Part shown: positions 13,165 to 55,464 of the stretch, piece by piece
Numbering within the stretch: position 1 is the stretch's first letter
How the letters are laid out: each line of letters begins with the position of its first letter
Virus record (IMG/VR): IMGVR_UViG_3300023184_004198
Location: 148,615-212,614 of that record
Direction: 5' to 3' (one strand)
Length of the DNA: 64,000 nt
Program-made: the position numbers and the translations under genes
The notes under the pieces: generated by a model
What the model was told of the DNA's origin: nothing
Seen by the model: the letters and a program-made list of their open reading frames with translations, nothing else
Database searches by the model: none

Positions 13165-14562
13165 TTACGCTACAATTTGATACCAAATATCTCCAGTGAC
13201 ACCAGCAATGTTGGGTCCTGTGGTTCCAATGTAACGTGTGCCGTATCCGTTACTGGTGGTGGCGATAGTAATAGTTCGATCGGCACTGAGATCGCCACCA
13301 CCAGTCAAACCACCTGTGCCTGTAATTGTTCTAGTGTTGGGTGGCACGCCAAGATTGGTTCTTGCCACTGCGGCAGTTGCACCACCGGTACCACCATCTG
13401 CCACAGCCAGTGGAGTGATACCACTTACAGCACCGCCAGTTATGACAACAGCATTGGCATTTTGCACTGCCATGGTGCCCACTGTTGTGATAGCACCTGT
13501 GGCTAGTCCAAGATTGGTTCTTGCATCAGCAGCATTGCTGGCGCCAGTGCCGCCATCTGCTACAGCCAGGTCTGTAATGCCTGAAATACTTCCGCCCAAA
13601 ATAGACACAGCAGTTCTATCTTGTGTGGACATCGTGCCCAGGCCGAGGTTGGTTCTTGCGCCGGCTGCGGTACTAGCACCTGTACCGCCATCTGCTACAG
13701 CCAGATCTGCAATACCTACAATGAACCCACCAGTGATAGCAACCACAGTGGAGTCTTGGAATGCCATGGTGCCTAGAGTGTTTATGTTGTTGATTACAAA
13801 CTCAGTACTGGCAATTTGTGTGGTGCTGGTTCCATTGGCAGCAGTGGGCGCTCTAGGTATTCCAGTAAAAACAGGACTGACTTTTTCATTTTGCACAAAA
13901 CTAGTTGTGGCAATTTGTGTGGTGTTAGTGCCATATGCCGCAGTGGGTGCAGTGGGTACACCGTTGAATGCTGGACTGTTGGACACAAACGCTGTGGTAG
14001 CAATTTGTGTGGTGTTGGTTCCTGCCACAGCAGTGGGTGCTGTGGGTGTGCCAGTAAATGCAGGTGAAACTTTTTCTCCTTGTACAAATGCTGTGGTAGC
14101 AATTTGTGTTGTTCCGGTTCCTGCTGTGGCTGTGGGTGCAGTAGGTGTGCCCGAAAATGCAGGAGATACTTTGTTGTTTTGTACAAATGCTGTAGTAGCA
14201 AGTTGTGTAGTACTGGTGCTGGTGCTGGCTGTGGGTGCAGTGGGTGTGCCTGAGAATGCAGGACTAATTTTTTGTAATTGCACATAATCTTGACTGGCCA
14301 GCGCAACCCAAACATTTGCTGTGCTGTAAGCACTGATGATATCATTGCCGGAATCATACCAAAGTTGACCCAAAATAGGCTGGGTAGGTGCAGTACCGTT
14401 GGCAAAATTTTCCAACAAATATACATAGTTTTCGTTTTGATAATCCCCGTAGTTGGTAACAGCACGACCCACTAGGGCAAGATCTGTGGCAGTGGTGTTA
14501 ACTGTGCCGTCTCCTACAACTGCTACAATTTGTCCACGAGTGTTATTGATGATATATGACAT
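13165..14562 (-). CDS. Tail fibre protein with internal repeats
   Basis: Five SPAFxGTPTAPTA...TTQIATTAFV repeats, three LAVADGGTGA..ARTNLG repeats, GDIWYQ end. Confidence 0.85.
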   Translation of the reverse strand: MSYIINNTRGQIVAVVGDGTVNTTATDLALVGRAVTNYGDYQNENYVYLLENFANGTAPTQPILGQLWYDSGNDIISAYSTANVWVALASQDYVQLQKISPAFSGTPTAPTASTSTSTTQLATTAFVQNNKVSPAFSGTPTAPTATAGTGTTQIATTAFVQGEKVSPAFTGTPTAPTAVAGTNTTQIATTAFVSNSPAFNGVPTAPTAAYGTNTTQIATTSFVQNEKVSPVFTGIPRAPTAANGTSTTQIASTEFVINNINTLGTMAFQDSTVVAITGGFIVGIADLAVADGGTGASTAAGARTNLGLGTMSTQDRTAVSILGGSISGITDLAVADGGTGASNAADARTNLGLATGAITTVGTMAVQNANAVVITGGAVSGITPLAVADGGTGGATAAVARTNLGVPPNTRTITGTGGLTGGGDLSADRTITIATTSNGYGTRYIGTTGPNIAGVTGDIWYQIVA

Positions 14563-21237: not shown

Positions 21238-22740
21238 ATGTCAAGTAATATTAACCCAAACAACATTGACGGCACATACCCCATTGCTGGTCAAGACAAT
21301 AACTCACAAGGTTTTCGTGACAATTTCACGCAGACCAAAGTTAACTTTCAGTATGCAGCCGATGAAATCAATGACTTGCAGGCCAAGGGTATTTTCAAAG
21401 CAGCACTTACTGGTACCACACTTGACAACAACATGAATGATGCGCTGTTGTATGCTGCCTTGATTCAAGATTTTGCCGCGGTAAAAATTGCACCCAGTCC
21501 GATTTCAGGCACATTAACATTGAATTATGCATCAGCACACTATCAAAGTTATACCACTGCCTCAGCAGGCAGTGTAACTCTGGCATTTTCTAACTTTCCA
21601 CCGTCGGGTACATATGGTTACATGAAATTGCAATTTACTGTGACCAATGTGAGTTACACATTGACCTTGCCTGCCGCAGTGAGTTTGGGTATCACAGGTG
21701 TGCAAGGTATTAGTCCTGGCACAGCAGGTATTCCCAATACCATTACATTTGGAACTACTGGTGTATATGAATTTGGTTTTGGCAGTTATGATGGTGGTAG
21801 CACCATAACCGTGTTTGACTTGAATCGTCCGTTGACATCCTTAGGAGGTGGTGCAGTCACTGTAGGTAGCCTAACTGCCAGTAGTTTTGTCAGCGCAACA
21901 GGCAATGTGATTGGTGGCAACATCAACTCAGCAGGTCTAGCATCAATCACTGGCAATGTGATTGGTGGCAACATCAACTCAGCAGGTCTAGCATCAATCA
22001 CTGGCAACATTCAAGGTGGCAATCTTCGCACAGTTGGCTTGGTCAGTGCCACAGGCAATGTCACAGGTGGCAACATTAATGGATTTGTCAGACCCTCCGT
22101 AGGCACTGCAACAGTTCCTGCATTGTCATTTACCACAGGCCTCAATATGACCACTCCTACAGCAGGTGCTGTAGAGTATGACGGTGTTACATTCTATGGT
22201 ACTCCCAATGCCAGCAATCGCGGTGTTTTAAACACATCGCACTTCATGGTCCTGGCCAGCGATTACATTGGCAGCGATACAAGTTCTGCACAAAAAGTTT
22301 TTAACCTAGGCACAGGATCAGCAGGTGCAATCACACTGCCTGCCAGCACCGCTTATTTCATGGAAGCAGTGTACTACATCACACGAGGAGTGGGATCAAA
22401 TTCACACACATTGAGCACACTGTTTGCACTGAGTTCAGCATTGACCGGTATTACATACACTGCCGATACTACTAGTACCACTGGTAATACCCTGGGTGCT
22501 GTGAGTAGAATATATGGTACAGCGGCCACAGCAGTGGCAGTCACTGGTGCCAGTACCAGTACAACTGAAAACATCACTGTGGTAATTCGTGGCATTGTTC
22601 GTACCAATGCATCTACAACCTTTACACCACAAGTGCAATACAGTTCGGCACCAGGTGGCGCTCCCACATTCTTGACCAACAGTTATATTCGATTGACACC
22701 AATCGGTAGCGGTGCTGTGACTTATGTGGGCAACTGGTAA
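21238..22740 (+). CDS. Virion structural/fibre protein
   Basis: YP.AGQDN.SQGFRDNF N-terminus; GNV.GGN repeats. Confidence 0.75.
   Translation: MSSNINPNNIDGTYPIAGQDNNSQGFRDNFTQTKVNFQYAADEINDLQAKGIFKAALTGTTLDNNMNDALLYAALIQDFAAVKIAPSPISGTLTLNYASAHYQSYTTASAGSVTLAFSNFPPSGTYGYMKLQFTVTNVSYTLTLPAAVSLGITGVQGISPGTAGIPNTITFGTTGVYEFGFGSYDGGSTITVFDLNRPLTSLGGGAVTVGSLTASSFVSATGNVIGGNINSAGLASITGNVIGGNINSAGLASITGNIQGGNLRTVGLVSATGNVTGGNINGFVRPSVGTATVPALSFTTGLNMTTPTAGAVEYDGVTFYGTPNASNRGVLNTSHFMVLASDYIGSDTSSAQKVFNLGTGSAGAITLPASTAYFMEAVYYITRGVGSNSHTLSTLFALSSALTGITYTADTTSTTGNTLGAVSRIYGTAATAVAVTGASTSTTENITVVIRGIVRTNASTTFTPQVQYSSAPGGAPTFLTNSYIRLTPIGSGAVTYVGNW
21901..22007 (+). repeat. Perfect 51-bp in-frame tandem duplication
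   Basis: GGCAATGTGATTGGTGGCAACATCAACTCAGCAGGTCTAGCATCAATCACT twice. Confidence 0.95.
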
Positions 22741-40851: not shown

Positions 40852-43107
40852 ATGCAAAATAATCCCGAAATTGAACATATTGTTGAACAAGCAGTGAAAA
40901 TTGCGCGAGACAAACATCATGAATATGTGATCACCGAACACTTGTTGTTGAGCCTGATCAGGCATACACCTTTTCGTAAAACACTGGATCGTTTTGGTGT
41001 AGAAATTACACAAATGGATCAAGAAATTGAGGCCTATCTTGATGGATTGAAACACTTGGTCAAGACTGATGCAGATTTGCAACCACGCAAAACACAGACA
41101 CTAGAACGACTGTTCAATCGTGCCAATGTGCAGGTTATGTTCACTGGTCGTAGAACACTAACAACTTTGGACCTGTACTTGAGCATCATGGCCGAAACCA
41201 ACAGCCATGCACACTACTTCTTGCTGAAATATGGTGTGAAGAAAACTGAATTTGCTGATTTCTACAGCAAAAATTACACAGCCGCCGAAACAGCCCGGAT
41301 GAATACCAATCAGGCCAACGACATTTTGAACGAGTACTGCACCAATTTAACAGCACAGGCACAAGCAGATCAGTTGGAACCACTTATTGGTCGCCAAACC
41401 GAACTGCACGAAATGATCACAGTAATGGCACGACGTTTCAAAGCCAACGTGCTCATGGTGGGTGATCCTGGTGTGGGCAAGACCTGCATTGTGGACGGCC
41501 TTGCACAGGAAATTGTTGCTGGCCGTGTGCCCAAATTCATTCAGGACCACGAAGTATGGGGTTTGGAAATTGGTAGTCTGTTGGCAGGATCAAAGTATCG
41601 TGGTGAATTTGAAGAAAAATTCAAGGCTGTGATTGCTGCCTTGGAAACCAAGAAAAAATGTATCCTGTTTATTGACGAAGCACACACTATGAAAGGTGCT
41701 GGTTCAGGTTCACAAAGCAGTCTAGACTTTGCCAACATGTTGAAACCTGCAATCACCAAAGGCCACTTGAAAGTAATTGCTAGTACAACCTGGGAAGAAT
41801 ACTACGAATCATTTGAAAAGGATCGCGCACTCATGCGTAGATTCTACAGACTCAGCATTGACGAACCCGATCAGGACACCACAGAAAAGATTTTGATTGG
41901 GTTAAGCCCCAGATTGGAAAAATTTCATGACGTCATGATTGACACAGATGCTATCATGGCCTCTGTTGAACTGGCCAATCGATACATTCATGATCGTAAG
42001 AATCCTGACAAAGCCATTGATTTGTTGGATGCGTCATGTGCTAGAGAGCGTGTAAAGGATGCGGGCACAGTCACAGTCACCAAAGAAATGATTCAAGCAC
42101 AAGTAAGCCGTGTGGCAGGTGTACCTGTGGATCGCTTACAGAATGAACGCAGTGCAAAGATTGTGGATCTCGAAAGCAATATCAAGCAGAAGTTGTATGG
42201 ACAAGACTCAGCAGTGGATTCAGTGCTGGAACGTGTGTACATCAACTTTGCTGGTATTGGCAATGCCCGGCGTCCTATTAGCAGTTTCCTGTTCCTAGGC
42301 CCCACAGGTACAGGCAAAACTGAGTTAGCCAAACTGCTCGGCGAACACTTGGAAATGAAACTGTTGCGTTATGACATGAGTGAGTATCAGGAAAAACACA
42401 CAGTGTCAAGCCTGATTGGTGCGCCTCCTGGCTATGTGGGCTTTGAAGATGGCAACGTGGGCGGCGGCAAGTTAATTTCAGACATCAGCAAGAATCCCTA
42501 TGCTATTATCTTGTTTGACGAGATTGAAAAAGCACACAGTGATGTCACCAACATCTTGTTGCAGATGCTGGACGAGGGGCACATTACTAGTGCAAATGGC
42601 AAAAGAGTTGATGTGAAAAACTGTATCATTATTATGACATCAAACTTGGGTGCTCAAGCCAATGACACCAACAACATTGGTTTTGGATCATTGGAGAAGT
42701 CAGGAGAAGAAGACCGTGCAATGAAAGACTTCTTCCGTCCTGAACTGCGCAATCGCATTGACAAGATTTGCAAGTTCAACAAACTGAACACCTTGGCCAT
42801 CAAGAAGATTGTGGTCAAGTTCGTGGACGAACTCAAAGCCAGTATGACACACAAAAACATCAGACTGGTGCTGACTGAACCGGTGATTGACTACTTGGCT
42901 GACAAAGGCTACGACTCCAAGATGGGCGCACGTCCACTGAGTCGTAAGATTGATGAACTGATTCGTGTGCCACTGAGTAAGAAGATCCTGTTTGATCGAC
43001 TGGAAAATTGCACCATCACTGCTGTGATGACTGAAGATACAGTAGAGTTCAACATTGAGCAAGATGCTGTGACCATTGTGAACTCTGAGGGGATTATTAT
43101 TGTATAA
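40852..43107 (+). CDS. clpA: ATP-dependent Clp protease ATP-binding subunit, ClpA-like
   Basis: N-domain EHLLL; GDPGVGKT and GPTGTGKT Walker A; GAPPGYVG; IGF loop; no ClpB middle domain. Confidence 0.9.
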   Translation: MQNNPEIEHIVEQAVKIARDKHHEYVITEHLLLSLIRHTPFRKTLDRFGVEITQMDQEIEAYLDGLKHLVKTDADLQPRKTQTLERLFNRANVQVMFTGRRTLTTLDLYLSIMAETNSHAHYFLLKYGVKKTEFADFYSKNYTAAETARMNTNQANDILNEYCTNLTAQAQADQLEPLIGRQTELHEMITVMARRFKANVLMVGDPGVGKTCIVDGLAQEIVAGRVPKFIQDHEVWGLEIGSLLAGSKYRGEFEEKFKAVIAALETKKKCILFIDEAHTMKGAGSGSQSSLDFANMLKPAITKGHLKVIASTTWEEYYESFEKDRALMRRFYRLSIDEPDQDTTEKILIGLSPRLEKFHDVMIDTDAIMASVELANRYIHDRKNPDKAIDLLDASCARERVKDAGTVTVTKEMIQAQVSRVAGVPVDRLQNERSAKIVDLESNIKQKLYGQDSAVDSVLERVYINFAGIGNARRPISSFLFLGPTGTGKTELAKLLGEHLEMKLLRYDMSEYQEKHTVSSLIGAPPGYVGFEDGNVGGGKLISDISKNPYAIILFDEIEKAHSDVTNILLQMLDEGHITSANGKRVDVKNCIIIMTSNLGAQANDTNNIGFGSLEKSGEEDRAMKDFFRPELRNRIDKICKFNKLNTLAIKKIVVKFVDELKASMTHKNIRLVLTEPVIDYLADKGYDSKMGARPLSRKIDELIRVPLSKKILFDRLENCTITAVMTEDTVEFNIEQDAVTIVNSEGIIIV

Positions 43108-47142: not shown

Positions 47143-50100
47143 ATGAACATCAACGAACTAGACTCCTATAATCTTGCAGACGCAGTAAAATTTCACCGCC
47201 GTCTCAATCCCAGAATCTGGGGGCGAGACGAGCACTTGCTGCCTGAAGTGCGTGAAAAATTACTGGCCATTGCTGCGGATTTTCAAGAATTCCTGGGCGT
47301 GGATGATCTCAACGTTCAAGACATCACTATATCAGGCTCAAATGCAGCCTATTCATATACAAAAAATTCAGACATTGACCTGCATCTTGTGGTTGAGATG
47401 CCTGATGATCCTGTGTATCAGGAACTGTTCAACGCTAAAAAATATCAATACAACGACGAGCACAATATAAAGATTGGTGGTGCGGATGTAGAGTTATATG
47501 TACAGCCTAGTGATCAAGCACATCACAGCCAAGGCATTTATTCAATTCAAGACAACCAATGGTTGCAGGTACCTCAACGCAAACGTGCTCAAATAGATGA
47601 TGCGTGTGTGCGTGACAAGGTTGCAGACCTGGATGCCAGAATTCACGCTGCCGTCAAAAGCAAAAATATCGACGCTGTGACCACATTGTGGAACAAGATC
47701 AAAACCATGCGTCAAGCGGGACTCGAACAACATGGTGAGTTTGGCTGTGAAAACATTGCTTTCAAAATGTTGCGCAACAGCGGCTGCATTGGTGCGTTGA
47801 AAGATGCTAAAACAGCACTGCAAGATCGTGAACTCAGTCTGCATGAAGAGCCACGAAAGAGATTTCGTTATGGGTATGGTTCGACAATGGTTGAAGCATC
47901 TACTCCTGATGGAGTCAGTCCTACCACTCAAATGTTTTTGAATGAAGATGACGAGATTGAAACCAAAGTACGTGACTTCATCCAACATGTGACCACAGAA
48001 CTGGGTATTGACCCCATGCCAGAAATTCACTTGCACACTGATCCCGAATGGAGTGTACACAATCACAGTTTTGGTCGTTACGACCCTGACAGTCATACTT
48101 TGAATGTCAGCATGCCCAACCGCCACATCCTGGATGTGTTGCGTACAGTGGCACATGAACTGGTGCATTGCAGTCAAAACCAACAACATGGGCACTTGCC
48201 CGACGATGCAGGTGAAACTGGCAGTCGCTGGGAAAATGATGCCAATGCTCGTGCAGGTATCATCATGCGCGACTGGGCCAACGCACACCCAGAAGATTTT
48301 GAACAAGCACCCTTGGCAGAAAATGCTTCGGGCTATATTCCCAAGAACAAACGAGAAGCAGCCCGGCCACAGTATGCCATGGCACTGAGTGTGGATATCA
48401 AACCTGGGCAGGTGGGCAAAGAAGCCAACAAGTTGGCATTGAAAACTGGACGCAATGGTGAGCCAGGCTTGCTACAACCTGATGCACAAAACTTGTTGCG
48501 TGAGTTTGCAGAATTCGCAGAAGAACAAGAAAACTTGTTTGAAATAACCATGAGCCCCTCAAGTCTGCGCAAATTGAGTGCGCAAACTGGTGCCTTGGCC
48601 GGCATGGAATTTGAAATGTGTGTGCCCAACGTCGAAGGCAACGACGACGGTGATCAAGAACCTGACTATGACTATGATGAACGCTGCCGTAGCATTGAAG
48701 ATGCTGTGCAATTTTTCTATGATGGTGATTGGAACGGTCGTAGAGACGTAGAACGCATGCGTGAAAGAATGCAGAGTGATTTCAGTGATTGGCTGATGGA
48801 CAAGGTCTATCAAGACTGGGAACGCCATGGCGAGGAATATCTGGAAGAATGGGTGCCCAACAACGTGGACGAATCTGAGTGGAATCCTGAAGGCCTGGAA
48901 GGTGAGGCTCGTCAAGAAGCACTAGAAGAATACATCGCTGCTATGCATGCCGATGCCGGCAGCAGTGGTGATGCGTTTGATGAGTACAGAGAAGAAAATC
49001 AAGAGTCATATGACGAAAGTGACTGGTTGGATGACGAAGACCTAGACCGCATGAGTAGTATTGAAAATGCCTACTCAATGAACTGGCCGCACTGGACCAA
49101 CCCCGGCCGTGGCGAAACCAGCATTGAAGATATTGCTGACAGTTTTAGAGACGCAGTGGGCCGCCCAATACTAGCCAGCACCAGTTATCACAGCAGCCGA
49201 GTTGAACGACCCAGCACCAAAAACTTGGAATACATTGTAGAACCTGACAGCAGTATTGATGTTGATGACAACGACGATCGAGGCCTGGAGTTTGTAAGCC
49301 CGCCCTTGCCTATAGAAGAACTGCTGAGTGATTTGAACAAGGTCAAAGCCTGGGCTGATCGTACTGGTTGTTATACCAACGATTCAACCGGCCTGCATAT
49401 CAACGTGTCAGTACCTGGCTGGTCCGGCGACCTCAGTCAATTGGACTATGTAAAACTGGCCCTGTTGCTGGGCGATGAGCATGTGTTGGAATCTTTTGGA
49501 CGTGCTGGCAATACCTATTGCAAGTCAGCCATGGGCAAGATACAAAAAGCAGTGAAACAAAATCCTGACAAGGCAGAAGAACTGTTGGAACGCATGCGAC
49601 AGGGCATGGATCAACTGGCCAGCAAGGCCATACACTCAGGCGTCACAGACAAATACACATCAATCAACCCCAAAAATGGCTACATTGAATTCCGTTCACC
49701 CGGGGGCGATTGGTTGAATGATAACTTCAAAGAAATCGACAACACCCTGCGTAGATTCACAGTGGCCCTGAGTGCAGCCGTGGATCCTAAAGCGTATCGC
49801 CAAGAATATCTAAAGAAACTGTACAAATTGTTGGATGTTCACAGTGAAAAAGATCCCTTATCATACTTTGCAAAATTTGCCGCAGGCGAGTTGCCCAAGG
49901 CAGCACTGAAAAGTTTTGTGCGTCAAGCACAGTTAGAACGTGGTGTCAAGCGTGGCAAAGAAACAGGCCCAATGTGGTGGCGGGTGTACAAAGAAGGCAA
50001 AAATGCTGCCAACGGTGCCGTAATCGAAGTTGTGGCTTCTAGCCGAGAAGAAGCATTAGACAAAGCCGCCGAAGAATGGGGTGTGTTTAGCAACGAATAC

Positions 50101-52059
50101 CGACGTGCCATGTATGCCGAACCTGTACGTCCTTATGACGGAGTTGATACCAGCAGAGAGTATGAATTTTACGACCGACGGTCTGGTGCAGTGGTAGCCA
50201 CATTCCGTGCCAGTGATGATGATGCAGCCATAGCAAAACTGGATCAGTTCCGCGCAGCCCAAGTGCGAACACAGGGAATAACAGTGCCTCAAGCCAATGA
50301 GATATACGGTGTTCGTTCATCAGGAGTGGTCACTGCGCCGCCCAGAGATAGACCATCCACTGCTCCTATTCCAGGAAGCACCTTGGATCTACAACGTCAA
50401 CGACTGGCACAGGCACAATCGGGCGGCAACTGGGGTATTCTAATCACATCAAATGGTCGATTTGTTCGCATGTCTGGCACAGGTGATCCAACTGATAGAG
50501 CCCTGCGCAGATTTCCAAGTCGTGAGGCTGCTGAAGAATTTCTAGCACAAACTCGTGCAGAAAATCCCAACATGAGAACTGACATTGAGATTCGTGAGAT
50601 TCCTGCAGATTATCAATCACCCGGCCAACCTGCAGCAGCAATTCCCACCATTGACATTGATGTTGAACCTGCACCAGCACCACAGCCAGCGGGCATGGGA
50701 CAATGGAACGGACAATGGCGGGTCTTGGTTGGCGGTCAAGAAGTATACCGTTTTGGTGGTGTGGGCAACAGTCAAGCAGACGCCAATAGAATAGCAGCCG
50801 CTTGGTTGCGTGACAACGGACAAGGTGTATCTGGCGAAGGCTTTGAAGTATATCCGGTGATGAACGAAAGTTTGACTGAATCCAATCAACTGCAATTAAA
50901 AGATTTTGTGGTTACAATAAGTCCACATGCCCTGAGCCAAGCATATAACAAGGGTGTGGATGTTGACATTGTAGATGACATTTTGCGCAACATCAGTACA
51001 GTCAAAGATCGTATCATGAGCCTAGAACCTGGCAGAGCCCTGATCCTTCACAACGGACAAGGTACTGGCTTAGGCGTTCGTCGACAACAAGGCAACCGAT
51101 TGACCTTGGCCACAGTGTTTCCCACCAGTCCAGGATTTACTAAAGGCAAACATCCAACTTTTCGAGTTGAAGCAAACACTGTAGATGAAGGTGTAACGTC
51201 TGCCATGGATGCTGACCAAGTATTACACTATGTAAAAAAAACACATGGCGCCGACAAATTCAACATTGAATACAGCATAACTGATCATCCCCAGTGGGAA
51301 TTAAAAAATATTCCGTTGTCACAGTTGCACTTGGATCCTGATGGTGAACAACAGGATCCTTACAATAGAACCAACTGGGTTGACTACGATGTTGTGCGTG
51401 ATTTGATACCTAAGATCAAAAGCGTTCTGAAAAATACACCTATTGTGGTAGACGCCGACGGTTGGATCATTGACGGAAATCATCGTGCCATGGCAGCACT
51501 AGATGCAGGATTAACAAGTGTGCCTGCACTTGTACCTGTTATAGTTAAAGAAGATCTGACAGAAGCCAAAACAACCCGAGAAGATTTTGAGGGTATGACC
51601 ATTGAGATGATTAAAAATGGTCATGTATTAGTGATCAATGCGATTGATGATTGGGGCAATAATATCCTGGGTTCTGTTGCTTTCAATATTGGTGATGACA
51701 ATGATTTAGATCCACAAGACTTAAAGGTCGATGAAAGATATCAAGGTCAAGGTATTGCTCGAGTCATGTATGATTATGCAAAAAGCAAGGGCTACGAGAT
51801 TCATCGTAGTTATGACCAAACTGATGCCGGTCGAGGCTTTTGGGACAAGCATCGCGGAGCGGATGTGCGTGTATGGGAAAACTTTGCGGATGGCAAGAAT
51901 CCCGGACGCAAGGGTTTGAGCAAGCGTGTAGGAGTCAACACCAAAGCGTCAGTGAGTGATTTACGTAAGACTGCTAAAAATTCATCAGGTGAGAAACAAC
52001 GCATGGCCCACTGGCTGGCCAACATGAAAGCCGGCAGAGCCAAGGCCAAGAAGAAATGA
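47143..52059 (+). CDS. 1638-aa polyvalent protein: Pol-beta NTase, zincin peptidase, amidoligase, ParB-like, GNAT and basic modules
   Basis: GSNA.Y...SDIDLH; AHELVH; GMEFE...LEFVSPPL...TGLHIN...IEFRS; IDGNHRA; YQGQGIARVMY. Confidence 0.85.
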   Translation: MNINELDSYNLADAVKFHRRLNPRIWGRDEHLLPEVREKLLAIAADFQEFLGVDDLNVQDITISGSNAAYSYTKNSDIDLHLVVEMPDDPVYQELFNAKKYQYNDEHNIKIGGADVELYVQPSDQAHHSQGIYSIQDNQWLQVPQRKRAQIDDACVRDKVADLDARIHAAVKSKNIDAVTTLWNKIKTMRQAGLEQHGEFGCENIAFKMLRNSGCIGALKDAKTALQDRELSLHEEPRKRFRYGYGSTMVEASTPDGVSPTTQMFLNEDDEIETKVRDFIQHVTTELGIDPMPEIHLHTDPEWSVHNHSFGRYDPDSHTLNVSMPNRHILDVLRTVAHELVHCSQNQQHGHLPDDAGETGSRWENDANARAGIIMRDWANAHPEDFEQAPLAENASGYIPKNKREAARPQYAMALSVDIKPGQVGKEANKLALKTGRNGEPGLLQPDAQNLLREFAEFAEEQENLFEITMSPSSLRKLSAQTGALAGMEFEMCVPNVEGNDDGDQEPDYDYDERCRSIEDAVQFFYDGDWNGRRDVERMRERMQSDFSDWLMDKVYQDWERHGEEYLEEWVPNNVDESEWNPEGLEGEARQEALEEYIAAMHADAGSSGDAFDEYREENQESYDESDWLDDEDLDRMSSIENAYSMNWPHWTNPGRGETSIEDIADSFRDAVGRPILASTSYHSSRVERPSTKNLEYIVEPDSSIDVDDNDDRGLEFVSPPLPIEELLSDLNKVKAWADRTGCYTNDSTGLHINVSVPGWSGDLSQLDYVKLALLLGDEHVLESFGRAGNTYCKSAMGKIQKAVKQNPDKAEELLERMRQGMDQLASKAIHSGVTDKYTSINPKNGYIEFRSPGGDWLNDNFKEIDNTLRRFTVALSAAVDPKAYRQEYLKKLYKLLDVHSEKDPLSYFAKFAAGELPKAALKSFVRQAQLERGVKRGKETGPMWWRVYKEGKNAANGAVIEVVASSREEALDKAAEEWGVFSNEYRRAMYAEPVRPYDGVDTSREYEFYDRRSGAVVATFRASDDDAAIAKLDQFRAAQVRTQGITVPQANEIYGVRSSGVVTAPPRDRPSTAPIPGSTLDLQRQRLAQAQSGGNWGILITSNGRFVRMSGTGDPTDRALRRFPSREAAEEFLAQTRAENPNMRTDIEIREIPADYQSPGQPAAAIPTIDIDVEPAPAPQPAGMGQWNGQWRVLVGGQEVYRFGGVGNSQADANRIAAAWLRDNGQGVSGEGFEVYPVMNESLTESNQLQLKDFVVTISPHALSQAYNKGVDVDIVDDILRNISTVKDRIMSLEPGRALILHNGQGTGLGVRRQQGNRLTLATVFPTSPGFTKGKHPTFRVEANTVDEGVTSAMDADQVLHYVKKTHGADKFNIEYSITDHPQWELKNIPLSQLHLDPDGEQQDPYNRTNWVDYDVVRDLIPKIKSVLKNTPIVVDADGWIIDGNHRAMAALDAGLTSVPALVPVIVKEDLTEAKTTREDFEGMTIEMIKNGHVLVINAIDDWGNNILGSVAFNIGDDNDLDPQDLKVDERYQGQGIARVMYDYAKSKGYEIHRSYDQTDAGRGFWDKHRGADVRVWENFADGKNPGRKGLSKRVGVNTKASVSDLRKTAKNSSGEKQRMAHWLANMKAGRAKAKKK

Positions 52060-53602: not shown

Positions 53603-53956
53603 ATGAAGTACAGAGAAATTCTTGAAGCCTGCTGGACTGGTTATCGCCAAGCAGGCATGAAAAACAAAGGTGGTCGCCAGGTGCCCAATTGTGTACCAGT
53701 GCATGAAGCTGAACTGGAAGAAAATCTCCGTGACTGGTTCAAAGAAAAATGGGTGCGTTTTGGGCCTGATGGCAAAATTCGCGGCGATTGTGCCAGAGGA
53801 TCAGAATCGGAGGGCAAGCCCAAGTGTTTGCCCCAGGCCAAAGCACATGCCTTGGGCAAAAAAGGTCGTGCAAGTGCAGCGGCTCGCAAGCGCAGAGAAG
53901 ATCCCAACCCCAACCGTACAGGAAAGGCCATCAACGTGGCCACTAAAAAGAAATGA
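53603..53956 (+). CDS. Leader-bearing protein made of two basic Cys micro-domains
   Basis: MKYREILE|ACW.GY...VPNCVP; LEE|NLRDWFKEKWV...C...KPKCLP. Confidence 0.75.
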   Translation: MKYREILEACWTGYRQAGMKNKGGRQVPNCVPVHEAELEENLRDWFKEKWVRFGPDGKIRGDCARGSESEGKPKCLPQAKAHALGKKGRASAAARKRREDPNPNRTGKAINVATKKK

Positions 53957-55464
53957 TCATAGACGAACTATTTGAAGCCCCACAACAGTGTCCCGAATGC
54001 GGTGGCATCAGTTTCTCAGACTTGATCTTGGCTGAAAAGAAAGACGCCTGCTACTACAAAGTCAAAGCGTCAGCCAAAGTATGGCCGTCGGCGTATGCGT
54101 CAGGACGCTTGGTACAGTGCCGCAAAAAAGGTGCTGCCAACTATGGCAACAAGTCGGAAGGTGTGGCGGAAGTATACAATGCAATTACTGGTGCATTACT
54201 AGCATACGATGAGCATGAAAAAAACAAGGGTGTGGCGGAAGGCTCCGGCAACGTTGGCAATGCTATTAAATCTTTATACCAAAAGATCTATGCTGCTGGC
54301 GACGATGAAATAGAATATTTCTACAACGACAGTCCCATTTTTGCACAATACTGGGACGAATACGAAGGTGATCTAAACTCAATCATTGCCGAAGTTGATC
54401 CCGGCGAATTACAAGTAATGCTAGACGAATTAGAATCCTATGCTCAACAGGCAGGGTTGGCGGAAGAACAAGAGTTAGACGAAAAGTGGAGCCAAAAATA
54501 CAAGAGTTCAATCAACTGTGCCAACCCCAAGGGCTTCTCACAAAAGGCACACTGTGCTGGTCGTAAGAAAAATGAATCAATAGCAGAAGCACCACTACCT
54601 GGACAACGTCGTGACCCATTGGATCTTCAACCGTTGGAAGGTGGGTCAGCCGGTGGAGGATCTCTTGGCAGCGGCATTGGCCCACGTCCTGTTGAGCCTT
54701 TGCCTAAGTGGACTCCAACACGAATACCCGGAGTTGATGTTCACACTGGTCCACCTCCTGTGGTAACAAAACCCCCAAACATCAATTCAAAAATAGATCC
54801 AGCTGCAGAAGTACCTGCTTATGTAAGACAAGGTAAACCAGATCCTGTTACTACACCTGTTGGCAAACCCAAAATTCAAATCAAGCCTGGCGAGACCATG
54901 GATCAGGCCATACAACGCACCCGGGCCGAACAAGAATTCAGCAATTTTCTCAAGGGCCAAGGCGGTCAGTCATTTGGCACTGCAGGTGGCGGGCGTGGAG
55001 GTCAAGGTGGGCCAACAGCCTCTCAAGCAACATCTGGCTCTGACCAAGTACCAACAATAAGACTTCCCGGTGGGAAATTAAGCGTGGATCCCGATCGTTT
55101 GTCTCCAAGTGGCAATTATAAAACACCGGCAACATCATCAGATCATGTCGGGGACAAAGAAGCCTATAATGCAGCCTTGAAGATACGAAAAGATCAGTGG
55201 AATCAACTGAAGACTGGCAAAGAAAAAGAAGGCGAGAAACGTCGAAGTGCATGGAAAAATCCCGAAACTGACGTAGACCTAGAAGAAACACGTAAAAAAC
55301 GTGAGCAGCCTGAAGCCAACTACGACGACGAATACGATGCCATGGTTGCTAGAGTTAAAAAATTAGCCGGATTGGGTCCCATGAAAACTGTGTATGATCC
55401 CAACAAGCGACAATATCGCAACATGCCCACAGCAGTACAACCCAAAGTACAGCCTAAAAAATGA
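53953..55464 (+). CDS. Leader-bearing modular polyprotein
   Basis: MIIDELFE; modules bounded by LAE, GVAE, GVAE, GLAE, LDE, IAE, LEE. Confidence 0.8.
   Translation: MIIDELFEAPQQCPECGGISFSDLILAEKKDACYYKVKASAKVWPSAYASGRLVQCRKKGAANYGNKSEGVAEVYNAITGALLAYDEHEKNKGVAEGSGNVGNAIKSLYQKIYAAGDDEIEYFYNDSPIFAQYWDEYEGDLNSIIAEVDPGELQVMLDELESYAQQAGLAEEQELDEKWSQKYKSSINCANPKGFSQKAHCAGRKKNESIAEAPLPGQRRDPLDLQPLEGGSAGGGSLGSGIGPRPVEPLPKWTPTRIPGVDVHTGPPPVVTKPPNINSKIDPAAEVPAYVRQGKPDPVTTPVGKPKIQIKPGETMDQAIQRTRAEQEFSNFLKGQGGQSFGTAGGGRGGQGGPTASQATSGSDQVPTIRLPGGKLSVDPDRLSPSGNYKTPATSSDHVGDKEAYNAALKIRKDQWNQLKTGKEKEGEKRRSAWKNPETDVDLEETRKKREQPEANYDDEYDAMVARVKKLAGLGPMKTVYDPNKRQYRNMPTAVQPKVQPKK
54160..54240 (+). repeat. Direct repeat GGTGTGGCGGAA(G) encoding GVAE
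   Basis: Copies at 54160-54171 and 54229-54240; variant GGGTTGGCGGAA at 54454-54465. Confidence 0.85.

Follow-up and report, generated by a model that had tools for sequence, protein, structure and literature searches.

Prohead proteases of T4-type phages cut after glutamate (PMC5694885, PMC9026906), and the T4 capsid-targeting sequence, MKTYQEFIAE, ends in I-A-E (PMC8442874). The T4 internal proteins processed by gp21, grouped with the inner-body and ejection proteins of phiKZ and SPN3US, which are cleaved several times, are among the closest described systems to the gene reported here. The likeness consists of a T4-type head, a gp21-like protease in related records, a leader resembling the T4 targeting sequence, a presumed cut after Glu in a hydrophobic-x-Glu motif and products that are presumably packaged. 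The differences are that here many unrelated modules lie in one open reading frame (ORF) with a putative cut site between each, and that this presumed cut site, the cleavage of which is inferred, is also fixed in the DNA.

The polyvalent proteins described by Iyer et al. 2017 (PMC5512222) consist of two to fifteen unrelated domains in mosaic architectures, are carried by a phage or plasmid, and are believed to be delivered together with the DNA and divided into units by processing. The 503-aa gene studied here fits this definition, and in both cases long chains are built from small conflict-type domains that are unrelated to one another and extremely mosaic in arrangement; the domains in common are ParB-like, GNAT and zinc ribbon domains and many of unknown function. 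On the other hand, we infer that in our case the prohead protease would do the processing, at a linker of uniform type. No zincin-like (MPTase) or other peptidase family was found in the 503-aa gene or 10 relatives (E 0.01), and a search of the text of Iyer et al. 2017 turned up no reference to any linker conserved in its DNA.

Short conserved sequences bordering hypervariable segments are also known from the glycine-rich motifs of T-even gp37/gp38 and from the PeSL cassettes, and in T4-type phages exchanges take place in or near such sequences (PMC3157838, PMC2839356). The gp37/gp38 motifs are structural parts of one protein and PeSL are intergenic promoter-terminator elements; neither is so here, where the motif would be a disposable linker, probably also a protease site, separating whole unrelated domains. 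In CdiA, VENN-type demarcation motifs are conserved peptides that border a variable module as in our gene, with a possible role in proteolytic release, and their coding region serves as homology for swapping in 'orphan' modules (PMC7662968). However, CdiA has one border per protein and its homology extends far upstream, whereas here a short word occurs in many tandem copies per ORF and every module is flanked on both sides. Finally, integron attC and shufflon sfx sites are repeated short DNA sites that bound exchangeable cassettes, and the shufflon sites lie within a coding region as ours do. Unlike those systems, our locus shows no dedicated recombinase nearby and no inverted-repeat structure, and its repeats are direct and translated. 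Nothing relevant emerged from literature searches on the GVAE motif or on conserved linkers in phage polyproteins.

The modular gene and its phage

The window is the whole stretch of 64,000 nucleotides that was analysed. It contains a multi-module gene whose N- and C-terminal modules are conserved while the modules between are variable; the IMG/VR orthologues keep both ends and differ in their internal modules. There are at least 5 modules in this gene and up to about 10 in its relatives, whose chains include GNAT, ParB_N, zinc ribbon, DUF5872 and DUF6321 domains. The features, all on the plus strand, are listed below.

53603-53956 (+): upstream ORF of 117 aa, two more modules from the same repertoire, with leader MKYREILE
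53953-55464 (+): multi-module ('polyprotein') gene, 503 aa, defined by ORF and translation
53953-53976 (+): N-terminal leader M-I-I-D-E-L-F-E with a hydrophobic-x-Glu end, resembling the T4 capsid-targeting sequence
53977-54159 (+): module A, a CPxCGG zinc-ribbon-like stretch and a DUF5872-type WPSAYASG...CRKKGAANYG motif, with PHROG matches
54160-54172 (+): junction 1, GGT GTG GCG GAA G = G-V-A-E, identical to the core of the family consensus
54173-54228 (+): module B (VYNAITGALLAYDEHEKNK), a short strain-specific insert flanked by two identical junctions
54229-54241 (+): junction 2, GGT GTG GCG GAA G = G-V-A-E, with GGC next to it, the consensus codon there
54242-54453 (+): module C (GSGNVGNAIKSLY...ESYAQQA), mobile, following other neighbours elsewhere, with an internal IIAE
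54454-54466 (+): junction 3, GGG TTG GCG GAA G = G-L-A-E, a core variant differing in two bases
54467-54576 (+): module D (EQELDEKWSQKYKSSINCANPKGFSQKAHCAGRKKNE), widely shared (66 related loci), with high contig depth in all runs
54577-54588 (+): degenerate junction, TCA ATA GCA GAA = S-I-A-E, without the consensus codons
54589-55274 (+): low-complexity Gly/Pro-rich variable region, parts of which are common to related loci L006 and L009 only
55275-55461 (+): conserved C-terminal module (...YDDEYDAMVARVKKLAGLGP...), present in 25 related loci, where aligned-contig depth climbs again

Module A is common to hypothetical proteins of cyanomyoviruses (tblastn and blastn against Synechococcus and Prochlorococcus phages), and its DNA match to these phages stops at 54161; DUF5872 was also detected in relatives of the 503-aa gene. 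In three relatives (L012, L015 and L061) the upstream ORF and module A are a single fused ORF. Module B has no homologue among about 200 related loci and is covered solely by contigs of its own strain, while homologues of module C were found in different contexts in L197 (71% aa), L157, L101 and L006. Single-sequence AlphaFold2 on residues 1-230 gave a mean pLDDT of 39.6 and no usable structure.

A gp23-type capsid gene is found at the start of the record (bases 57-1253); the phage, an uncultured huge freshwater phage of about 350 kb, has a T4-type head. The gp21-type prohead protease family, PF03420 (Peptidase_S77), was not found in the window's record, which is 61% complete; 3 of 5 related records, two complete ones among them, do contain it, with E values of 1e-24 to 1e-28, and in these relatives the gene stands next to the scaffold and capsid genes, on their upstream side. 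Due to this gene order and the position of the capsid gene at the record's start, the protease gene probably lies just beyond that start and was cut off there. An HK97-type protease (PF04586) was absent. A RecA/UvsX-type gene (E about 5e-16) is carried both by the window's record and by two complete relatives.

The junctions follow the pattern G-(V/M/L/I)-A-E, that is, they end in Glu with a small or hydrophobic P3 residue, which matches the criterion for the protease motif. The leaders follow the pattern M-(K/R/N)-x-x-(E/D)-(F/I/L)-(I/F/L)-x-E, and [LIVMF]-x-E occurs in residues 3-14 of 88 of the 127 distinct N-termini (69%) compared with 41 of 262 ORFs of the record (16%). The likeness of the leaders to T4 was judged by eye and motif, without a statistical alignment. 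The first-pass annotation had proposed that the junction encodes a cleavage site; this is plausible, with cleavage inferred from the T4-type head, the relatives' gp21-type protease, the hydrophobic-x-Glu motif and the leaders.

Codon fixation at the junctions

The first-pass annotation had claimed that a 13-mer occurs identically twice, with a variant copy further on, at junctions between unrelated modules. All of this held: GGTGTGGCGGAAG is found at 54160-54172 and 54229-54241, 69 bases apart, the variant GGGTTGGCGGAAG is found at 54454-54466 with two mismatches, and the three copies are in frame, encoding GVAE, GVAE and GLAE, with unrelated modules on either side. When exact copies of the 13-mer were counted in the whole 212.6 kb record, only the window pair was found. 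A similar close pair (13-mer, within 100 bases) appeared in 23 of 200 codon-shuffled windows, and so the pair taken alone is weak evidence, within chance; the family-wide signal is decisive.

The claim that all three junctions use GCG, not a common Ala codon in this gene, was also correct, GCG accounting for 6 of the 46 Ala codons of the gene, 3 of them at the junctions. Across the record the GCG share of Ala codons is 6.5%, and it is 7% in the G-GCN-G context; judged against the background codon frequency, p is about 3e-4 for three GCG of three. The remaining two G[VL]AE sites of the record have the Ala codons GCT and GCA, and in the same gene the IIAE inside module C has GCC and the SIAE has GCA.

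For the family-wide analysis, related genes on 80 viral contigs were picked by protein patterns without the junction, and 97 distinct junction contexts were analysed. The consensus junction is CAA GGT GTG GCG GAA GGC, encoding Q-G-V-A-E-G. Junction Ala is GCG in 66 of 97 contexts (68%) compared with 7% elsewhere in the same genes, with a binomial p of about 1e-52; the p-values are nominal, as the junction contexts are phylogenetically non-independent. Similarly, junction Val is GTG in 58 of 73 (79%, versus 22% elsewhere in the same genes), the preceding codon ends in A in 88 of 97 (for Gln, CAA 50 times and CAG 0), and the Gly after the junction is GGC in 35 of 49 (71%, versus a background of 30%). 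The core 12-mer has 63 occurrences on the coding strand and 0 on the opposite strand in 697 kb, nearly always in a long coding frame. At least 120 IMG/VR stretches contain the 18-mer, with as many as 4 copies of it in 4.5 kb, and the copies of the junction word in any one genome together span about 20 kb or less. Core variants are mostly one transition away from the consensus (GCA, GTA, GGC, GAG). As a control, another linker conserved in these genes, ES[SA]I[LM][KE]G[IL], shows ordinary codon variety. The annotation's own refutation, that GVAE elsewhere uses random codons, thus failed, the codons being non-random in the 97 distinct contexts.

One explanation for these codons is an RNA or translation function that selects nucleotides, such as a G-rich pause, a two-layer G-quadruplex, a Shine-Dalgarno-like AGGUG or a tRNA need; it would act in module folding or release during translation, and the word would stand at module boundaries merely as a linker. 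In its favour, the preferred GTG and GCG followed by GG give four GG runs, and GG-N-GG-N-GG-N-GG is present in 38 of 97 contexts versus 1.2% of random windows; the rare codon GCG is chosen despite general CpG avoidance (CpG observed/expected 0.63), and the word is strictly specific to strand and frame. However, the predicted quadruplex is marginal (-1.36 kcal/mol) and is missing in 59 of 97 contexts, including the first site of the window; the GMAE variant lacks AGGUG, and there is no cluster of rare codons, GGT, GAA and CAA being common. Phage tRNAs for GCG or GTG were not seen, no tRNA gene being found in the partial record. Orthologous pairs give no sign of purifying selection at core synonymous sites: synonymous differences are 21% in the core and 13% in the flanks, although with only 7 groups there is no power. 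The trend is against selection; the result fits a recombination filter but is no positive proof. An RNA signal would also leave unexplained the 95-99% identical cassettes bounded by junctions, and we regard it as unlikely.

Some other readings of the word were tried and rejected. Apparent junction 'alleles' (linkage of GGT with GTG and of GGC with ATG) reflect a gene-wide Gly-codon preference before G-initial codons, with CpG avoidance at the codon border. Internal starts at the junction GTG, ATG or TTG were rejected, as only 8 ORFs begin near the word and no ribosome-binding motif shows in the logo of the upstream sequence. The two-layer G-quadruplex was dropped as the main cause, given its marginal energy and restricted occurrence, and survives only within the minor RNA rival. 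A Chi-like or genome-wide signal does not fit a word that is limited to few genes and one strand and that numbers 2-5 copies in a 350 kb genome.

Breakpoints of likeness at the junctions

Of the internal BLAST segment ends, 18-19% are 12 bases or less from a junction, compared with 3-4% for random positions, an enrichment of about 5-fold. Among 14 high-identity internal segments, 13 end at a junction and 5 are junction-bounded on both sides, so that cassettes of 95-99% DNA identity sit between two junctions with unrelated flanks. Two ORFs on one contig (L139) have such a cassette in common, and a hybrid junction there has its crossover inside the word. There are 60 pairs that share only the right module and 105 that share only the left one; relative to the junction, likeness on the left breaks off at -3 and that on the right begins at +13. 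In contigs from other lake samples, likeness to the window is lost exactly at 54172 and regained at 54458, and foreign contigs break at 54576, where they continue with D-V-A-E compared with S-I-A-E in the window. The second refutation, that breakpoints do not map to the repeat, therefore also failed. The check for gain or loss at the repeat was negative for the 69-base module between the identical 13-mers, for which none was seen in contigs matched to the window; only assembled contigs were searched, in which rare variants drop out.

One alternative is that there is no DNA-level role at all: the codons would come from common descent of linkers copied with their modules, and protein selection would retain exchanges at domain boundaries. 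An exchange between unrelated modules necessarily ends at a module boundary, core variants resemble neutral decay by transitions, and the window pair alone is within chance. On the other hand, core variants are inherited with neither flanking module, which shows that the linkers are not simply carried along; the control linker of the same genes has no codon fixation; the rare codons are common to at least 97 unrelated contexts; and left and right likeness overlap exactly on the word. This explanation is improbable.

Alternatively, the 18-base word could be recognised by a dedicated enzyme (a site-specific recombinase, a homing-type nuclease or a ParB-like nuclease module), with modules moved as cassettes in the manner of integron attC or shufflon sfx. 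The very sharp joints at -3 and +13, the retention of the word across many divergent contigs and the ParB_N-like modules in several chains support this. However, a scan of the 9 neighbouring ORFs (the neighbourhood only) turned up no gene for a recombinase, integrase or homing nuclease, sequence inspection and folding of the 18-base consensus gave no internal complementarity and no inverted-repeat core such as these sites commonly have, and the crossover inside the word in the L139 hybrid junction is what homology-driven exchange predicts. We regard a dedicated enzyme as unlikely.

Assembly artefact, in which assemblers fused different phages at the repeated word, is the least credible explanation. 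All the sequences are metagenomic assemblies, and shared modules of 100-400 bases could yield some chimeric contigs. Nevertheless, the 18-base word is shorter than usual assembly k-mers, contigs of two other studies reproduce 54143-54487 with its three junctions without a difference, the codon statistics are independent of contig joining, and both cassette copies in L139 lie on a single contig.

The criteria for homology-driven exchange are met: a DNA motif borders the variable segments, the joints fall in or beside it, and a general recombination gene is present. The proposal of the first-pass annotation that the identity reflects a DNA function, a recombination site that inserts modules in frame, is thus largely supported, while the recombination mechanism is inferred. 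It remains possible that the DNA identity is a by-product of recombination that needs a near-perfect short match; selection on the identity itself was not demonstrated.

A proposed dual-role junction and its meaning

Our main reading, to which we give a probability of roughly 0.6, is that the junction has a dual role: a linker for the prohead protease whose coding DNA is also a patch of microhomology for in-frame module exchange, both the cleavage and the recombination mechanism being inferred. The 503-aa protein would be a chain of small modules, each folding independently, which enters the prohead by its T4-like leader. The gp21-type protease would then cut after Glu at every (V/M/L/I)-A-E junction, and the freed modules would be packaged alongside the DNA, some of them probably to be ejected with it. 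Since all modules have this nearly fixed word, 12-18 bases long, on both sides and always in one frame, whole modules could be swapped, inserted, duplicated or deleted when one junction recombines with another by homology, within one genome or between co-infecting relatives. The phage carries a RecA/UvsX-type recombinase; the pattern is seen in the sequences, and the enzymology is inferred. Every such exchange would preserve the reading frame and a cleavable linker.

Recombination would in addition act as a filter. If only near-perfect junctions recombine, new module combinations start with a consensus junction, and old fixed junctions would decay afterwards, mainly through single transitions. 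We infer that this filter best explains the synonymous-site identity, with no recombination event directly observed. Against the main reading, none of cleavage, packaging and recombination was directly observed, and eighteen bases are short for RecA-type exchange. The absence of the protease gene from the incomplete record, core synonymous sites no better conserved than the flanks in the 7 orthologous groups, and the lack of any deletion of the 69-base module among assembled contigs also count against it.

A bolder reading takes the 18-base word as an active recognised element, a nuclease or recombinase target or an RNA release signal, and not as passive homology; we think it unlikely. If true, the nuclease or recombinase version would mean in-frame capture of cassettes, a protein-level 'integron' in a capsid-delivered polyprotein, and the RNA version would tie the freeing of single modules to translation. 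Both versions would amount to a system of programmed diversification of a type new to phages.

The proposed dual-role junction offers a concrete and testable rule for how huge phages build and reshuffle multi-domain proteins that are probably injected with the DNA: with the same translated word round every module, exchange from junction to junction stays in frame and cleavable. It joins three topics that are usually separate, namely processing by the prohead protease, polyvalent or ejected proteins, and modular evolution by means of short conserved sequences. The word can serve as a probe, at least 120 viral contigs having been retrieved with nothing but the exact 18-mer, and a catalogue of the module repertoire is thus feasible, including hundreds of small domains of unknown function, which are candidates for roles in host takeover or anti-defence. 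It also suggests a natural design for packaging several cargoes in T4-type capsids.

The window gene and its junctions

The record (IMG/VR) is 212.6 kb long, with an estimated completeness of 61% and a GC content of 44.6%, and the window is its final 64 kb. The gene under study and its parts are as follows.

53953-55464 (+): multi-module ORF, 503 aa
before junction 1: module A, zinc-ribbon-like CPxCGG stretch and DUF5872-type motif
54160 (+): junction 1, GGTGTGGCGGAAG, GVAE, exact 13-mer, in frame
between junctions 1 and 2: module B, insert of 19 residues
54229 (+): junction 2, GGTGTGGCGGAAG, GVAE, exact 13-mer, in frame
between junctions 2 and 3: module C, about 70 residues
54454 (+): junction 3, variant GGGTTGGCGGAAG, GLAE, in frame
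after junction 3: module D, widespread motif EQELDEKWSQKYK...GRKKNE
54577-54588 (+): fourth junction, degenerate, SIAE
downstream of the SIAE junction: Gly/Pro-rich region, then a conserved C-terminal module

The first-pass annotation had claimed two identical 13-mers 69 bp apart and a variant at 54454, set between unrelated modules, and this held; no further exact copy of the 13-mer was found across the whole record. A close pair of 13-mers (100 bases or less) was also seen in 23 of 200 codon-shuffled windows, and on the evidence of the window only, the junction pattern exceeds chance just in part. Alanine is encoded by GCG at 3/3 window junctions, against a low GCG share of alanine codons (6.5% record-wide, 7% where the context is likewise G|GCN|G) and a depletion of CpG (observed/expected 0.63). 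The record's other two G[VL]AE sites and the gene's IIAE and SIAE use GCT, GCA, GCC and GCA.

Over 54038-54161, the DNA of module A matches hypothetical genes from myoviruses of marine Synechococcus and Prochlorococcus with 75-77% identity; the match stops where junction 1 begins, at its first base pair. The module is locally CpG-rich (TGG CCG TCG GCG TAT GCG). Elsewhere in the window, a tail-fibre-like gene (13165-14562, -) contains in-phase direct repeats of about 90-99 bases at 13809-14229, and the ORF at 21238-22740 has a 51-base repeat at 21901-21966. The 751-aa ORF at 40852-43107 (+), an unusual phage cargo, matches phrog_4871 (ATP-dependent protease) very strongly (E 1e-236). No tRNA genes were found in the 212 kb record.

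Fixed codons across the family

The family set consisted of 80 viral contigs retrieved through peptide patterns that excluded the junction. Its orthologues keep the N- and C-terminal modules while their internal modules differ, with borders of the form Q-G-(V/M)-A-E-G. GCG makes up 68% of the junction alanines in 52 distinct ORFs; for the rest of these genes the figure is 6.9%, and for A-E dipeptides outside the junction 7.1%. GTG supplies 81% of the junction valines (vs 22%), and GGT 76% of the glycines (vs 46%). When the junctions were collapsed to 97 contexts, each differing in at least one flank, GCG remained in 66 and GTG in 58 of the 73 with valine. A is the last base of the codon in front of the junction in 88/97 (CAA 50, CAG 0; background CAA 74%) and the following glycine is GGC in 35/49 (background 30%), which gives the consensus CAA GGT GTG GCG GAA GGC. 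The p-values (e.g. 1e-52 for GCG) are nominal, as junction contexts share phylogeny; still, the effect sizes are very large.

The 12-mer part of this word has 63 copies on the coding strand and none on the opposite strand (697 kb), nearly all within a long open frame. The exact 18-mer occurs in at least 120 IMG/VR stretches, with a maximum of four per 4.5 kb; complete relatives of 340-365 kb carry 2-5 copies on a single strand, all inside about 20 kb or less. Codon variety is ordinary in a control linker of the same genes, ES[SA]I[LM][KE]G[IL]. A linkage between the glycine codon and V/M was dropped, being ordinary CpG avoidance.

This second linker, E-S-(S/A)-I-(L/M)-(K/E)-G-(I/L), occurs in related loci such as L018, L069, L078 and L080. 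It matches MSSILKGL and MSNIVKGL, N-terminal leaders found on other genes, which suggests that internal linkers stem from leaders upon gene fusion; its codons are not fixed, unlike those of GVAE.

Probable module exchange at the word

Contigs of four other freshwater and marine runs were compared with the window. Likeness is lost exactly at 54172, with 7 loose ends and joints from there to 54458, 54465 and 54511; in foreign contigs it returns at 54458 and is broken again at 54576. Contigs of many phages extend over modules A and D; over B and C there are only those of the own strain. Two contigs, each from a different study, match 54143-54487 without a single difference, which rules out an assembly artefact as the source of the arrangement. 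Module C also occurs in four related loci (L197, L157, L101, L006) with other neighbours in front, and no relative of module B was found in the related-loci set. Several studies account for the runs with this gene, and most of these runs are metagenomes of lakes or other fresh water. Parts of the conserved modules are also present in one marine run.

Joints were mapped by all-against-all blastn of 222 multi-module ORFs with 466 junctions. Of the internal segment ends, 18-19% fall no more than 12 bases from a junction; random positions do so in 3-4%. Segment starts are most frequent at -6 to -2, segment ends at -1 to +5. There are 14 internal segments with 93% identity or more. In 13 of them the end coincides with a junction in each partner, and 5 have a junction on both sides and flanks that are unrelated. 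For example, two ORFs of one contig (L139) have a 167-base cassette in common (99.4% identity), and L011 and L198 share one of 423 bases (95%). Only the right-hand module is common to 60 context pairs and only the left-hand one to 105; left-hand likeness stops at -3 and right-hand likeness starts at +13. Non-consensus core bases follow neither flanking module. We consider it very likely, with a probability of roughly 0.9, that the word is a cassette border.

A module with the ending ...YEEAVAELKHC(L/M)KQ-GVAE is found in L137 and in L174 (ORF from base 1). It forms a tandem pair in L174, possibly a junction-to-junction duplication.

The annotation had proposed that constant GCG reflects a DNA function, a view to be refuted if GVAE sites elsewhere used random codons and breakpoints fell away from the repeat. 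Neither check refuted it: GVAE-type sites elsewhere use fixed codons (97 contexts, GCG in about two thirds), and joints map to the word both by blastn and in the window contigs (54172, 54458). A DNA function is thus supported, with exchange as the cause of codon identity unproven. No compared contig has a joint deleting the 69-base module, but rare variants are hidden in assembled contigs.

We account for the fixed codons, with moderate confidence and without proof, by homology-dependent exchange, the best available explanation. Exchange would occur only between near-identical junctions; every new module combination would start with the consensus word, and older junctions would decay. The sharp joints and a hybrid junction in L139 agree with such a recombination filter. 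Core variants are mainly single transitions (GCA, GTA, GGC, GAG) and not the otherwise common GCT/GCC, and they travel with neither flank. Orthologous pairs (few, in 7 groups) show no added core conservation, with synonymous differences of 21% in the core vs 13% in the flanks. Among the phage's genes is one for a RecA/UvsX-type recombinase.

Direct selection on RNA or translation could also fix codons, and the preferred ones do produce GG runs. However, this is unlikely: the two-layer quadruplex that is predicted has marginal energy, and most contexts, the window's first site among them, lack it; no ribosome-binding logo was found, and junction codons mix common and rare ones. A dedicated site-specific enzyme acting on the word is not excluded but is likewise improbable, as no such gene was found nearby and the word lacks an inverted-repeat core.

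The junction peptide, the modules and known systems

The annotation also took the junction for a cleavage site. Prohead proteases of the gp21 family cleave after Glu (A-X-E in SPN3US, S/A-X-E in phiKZ; PMC5694885, PMC9026906), and in T4 the cut in the capsid-targeting sequence MKTYQEFIAE follows the terminal I-A-E (PMC8442874); the junction (V/M/L/I)-A-E agrees with this pattern. A T4 gp23-type capsid gene opens the record (G000:C1:57-1253, outside the window; E 2e-97). In complete relatives, a gp21-type protease gene (Peptidase_S77, E 1e-24 to 1e-28) immediately precedes those for scaffold and capsid. No gp21-type match was found in this record (61% complete), probably because the gene would sit just beyond its first base: the record breaks off within the block of head genes, with scaffold and protease just upstream in relatives including L209.

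The multi-module genes start with M-(K/R/N)-x-x-(E/D)-(F/I/L)-(I/F/L)-x-E (53953-53976 and 53603-53626 in the window; loci L006-L208), much like the T4 sequence, and the window gene with MIIDELFE. Some leaders pass straight into the junction, e.g. MRATEFIIE + GVAE. [LIVMF]-x-E lies in residues 3-14 of 88/127 distinct N-termini, compared with 41/262 ORFs of the whole record. From the T4-type head, the protease of relatives, the motif and the leaders, we infer that the chains go to the prohead, where the head protease would separate them into their modules. Cleavage at the junction peptide is likely, but it is inferred and not shown.

The modules recognised in relatives include GNAT acetyltransferase, ParB_N, zinc ribbons, DUF5872 and DUF6321, with weak RMF-like and peptidoglycan-binding matches. 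This mix resembles that of polyvalent proteins (Iyer et al., PMC5512222); unlike those, no peptidase domain was found in the chains. Directly upstream, a 1638-aa protein (47143-52059, +) with amidoligase, ParB-like and GNAT matches and without GVAE junctions has the look of a polyvalent protein.

Short conserved in-frame motifs likewise guide exchange in T-even tail-fibre genes (PMC3157838); the PeSLs of T4-type genomes are also short conserved cassette borders, but intergenic (PMC2839356), and demarcation motifs of CdiA-type toxins unite processing and swapping (PMC7662968). In the literature searched, we found no disposable linker that is repeated many times in one ORF, is a probable prohead-protease site and keeps a fixed nucleotide sequence between hundreds of unrelated module pairs. 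We therefore regard this linker as a variant of a known phenomenon and not as a new category.

Hypothetical proteins of cyanomyoviruses contain these modules too, without the GVAE word. The cultured Xanthomonas jumbo phage XacN1 (385 kb; L213) has a stand-alone 81-aa ORF (AP018399.1 17450-17695) that matches one chain module, residues 123-226 of the protein of related locus L019, and XacN1 may thus offer an experimental handle on module function.
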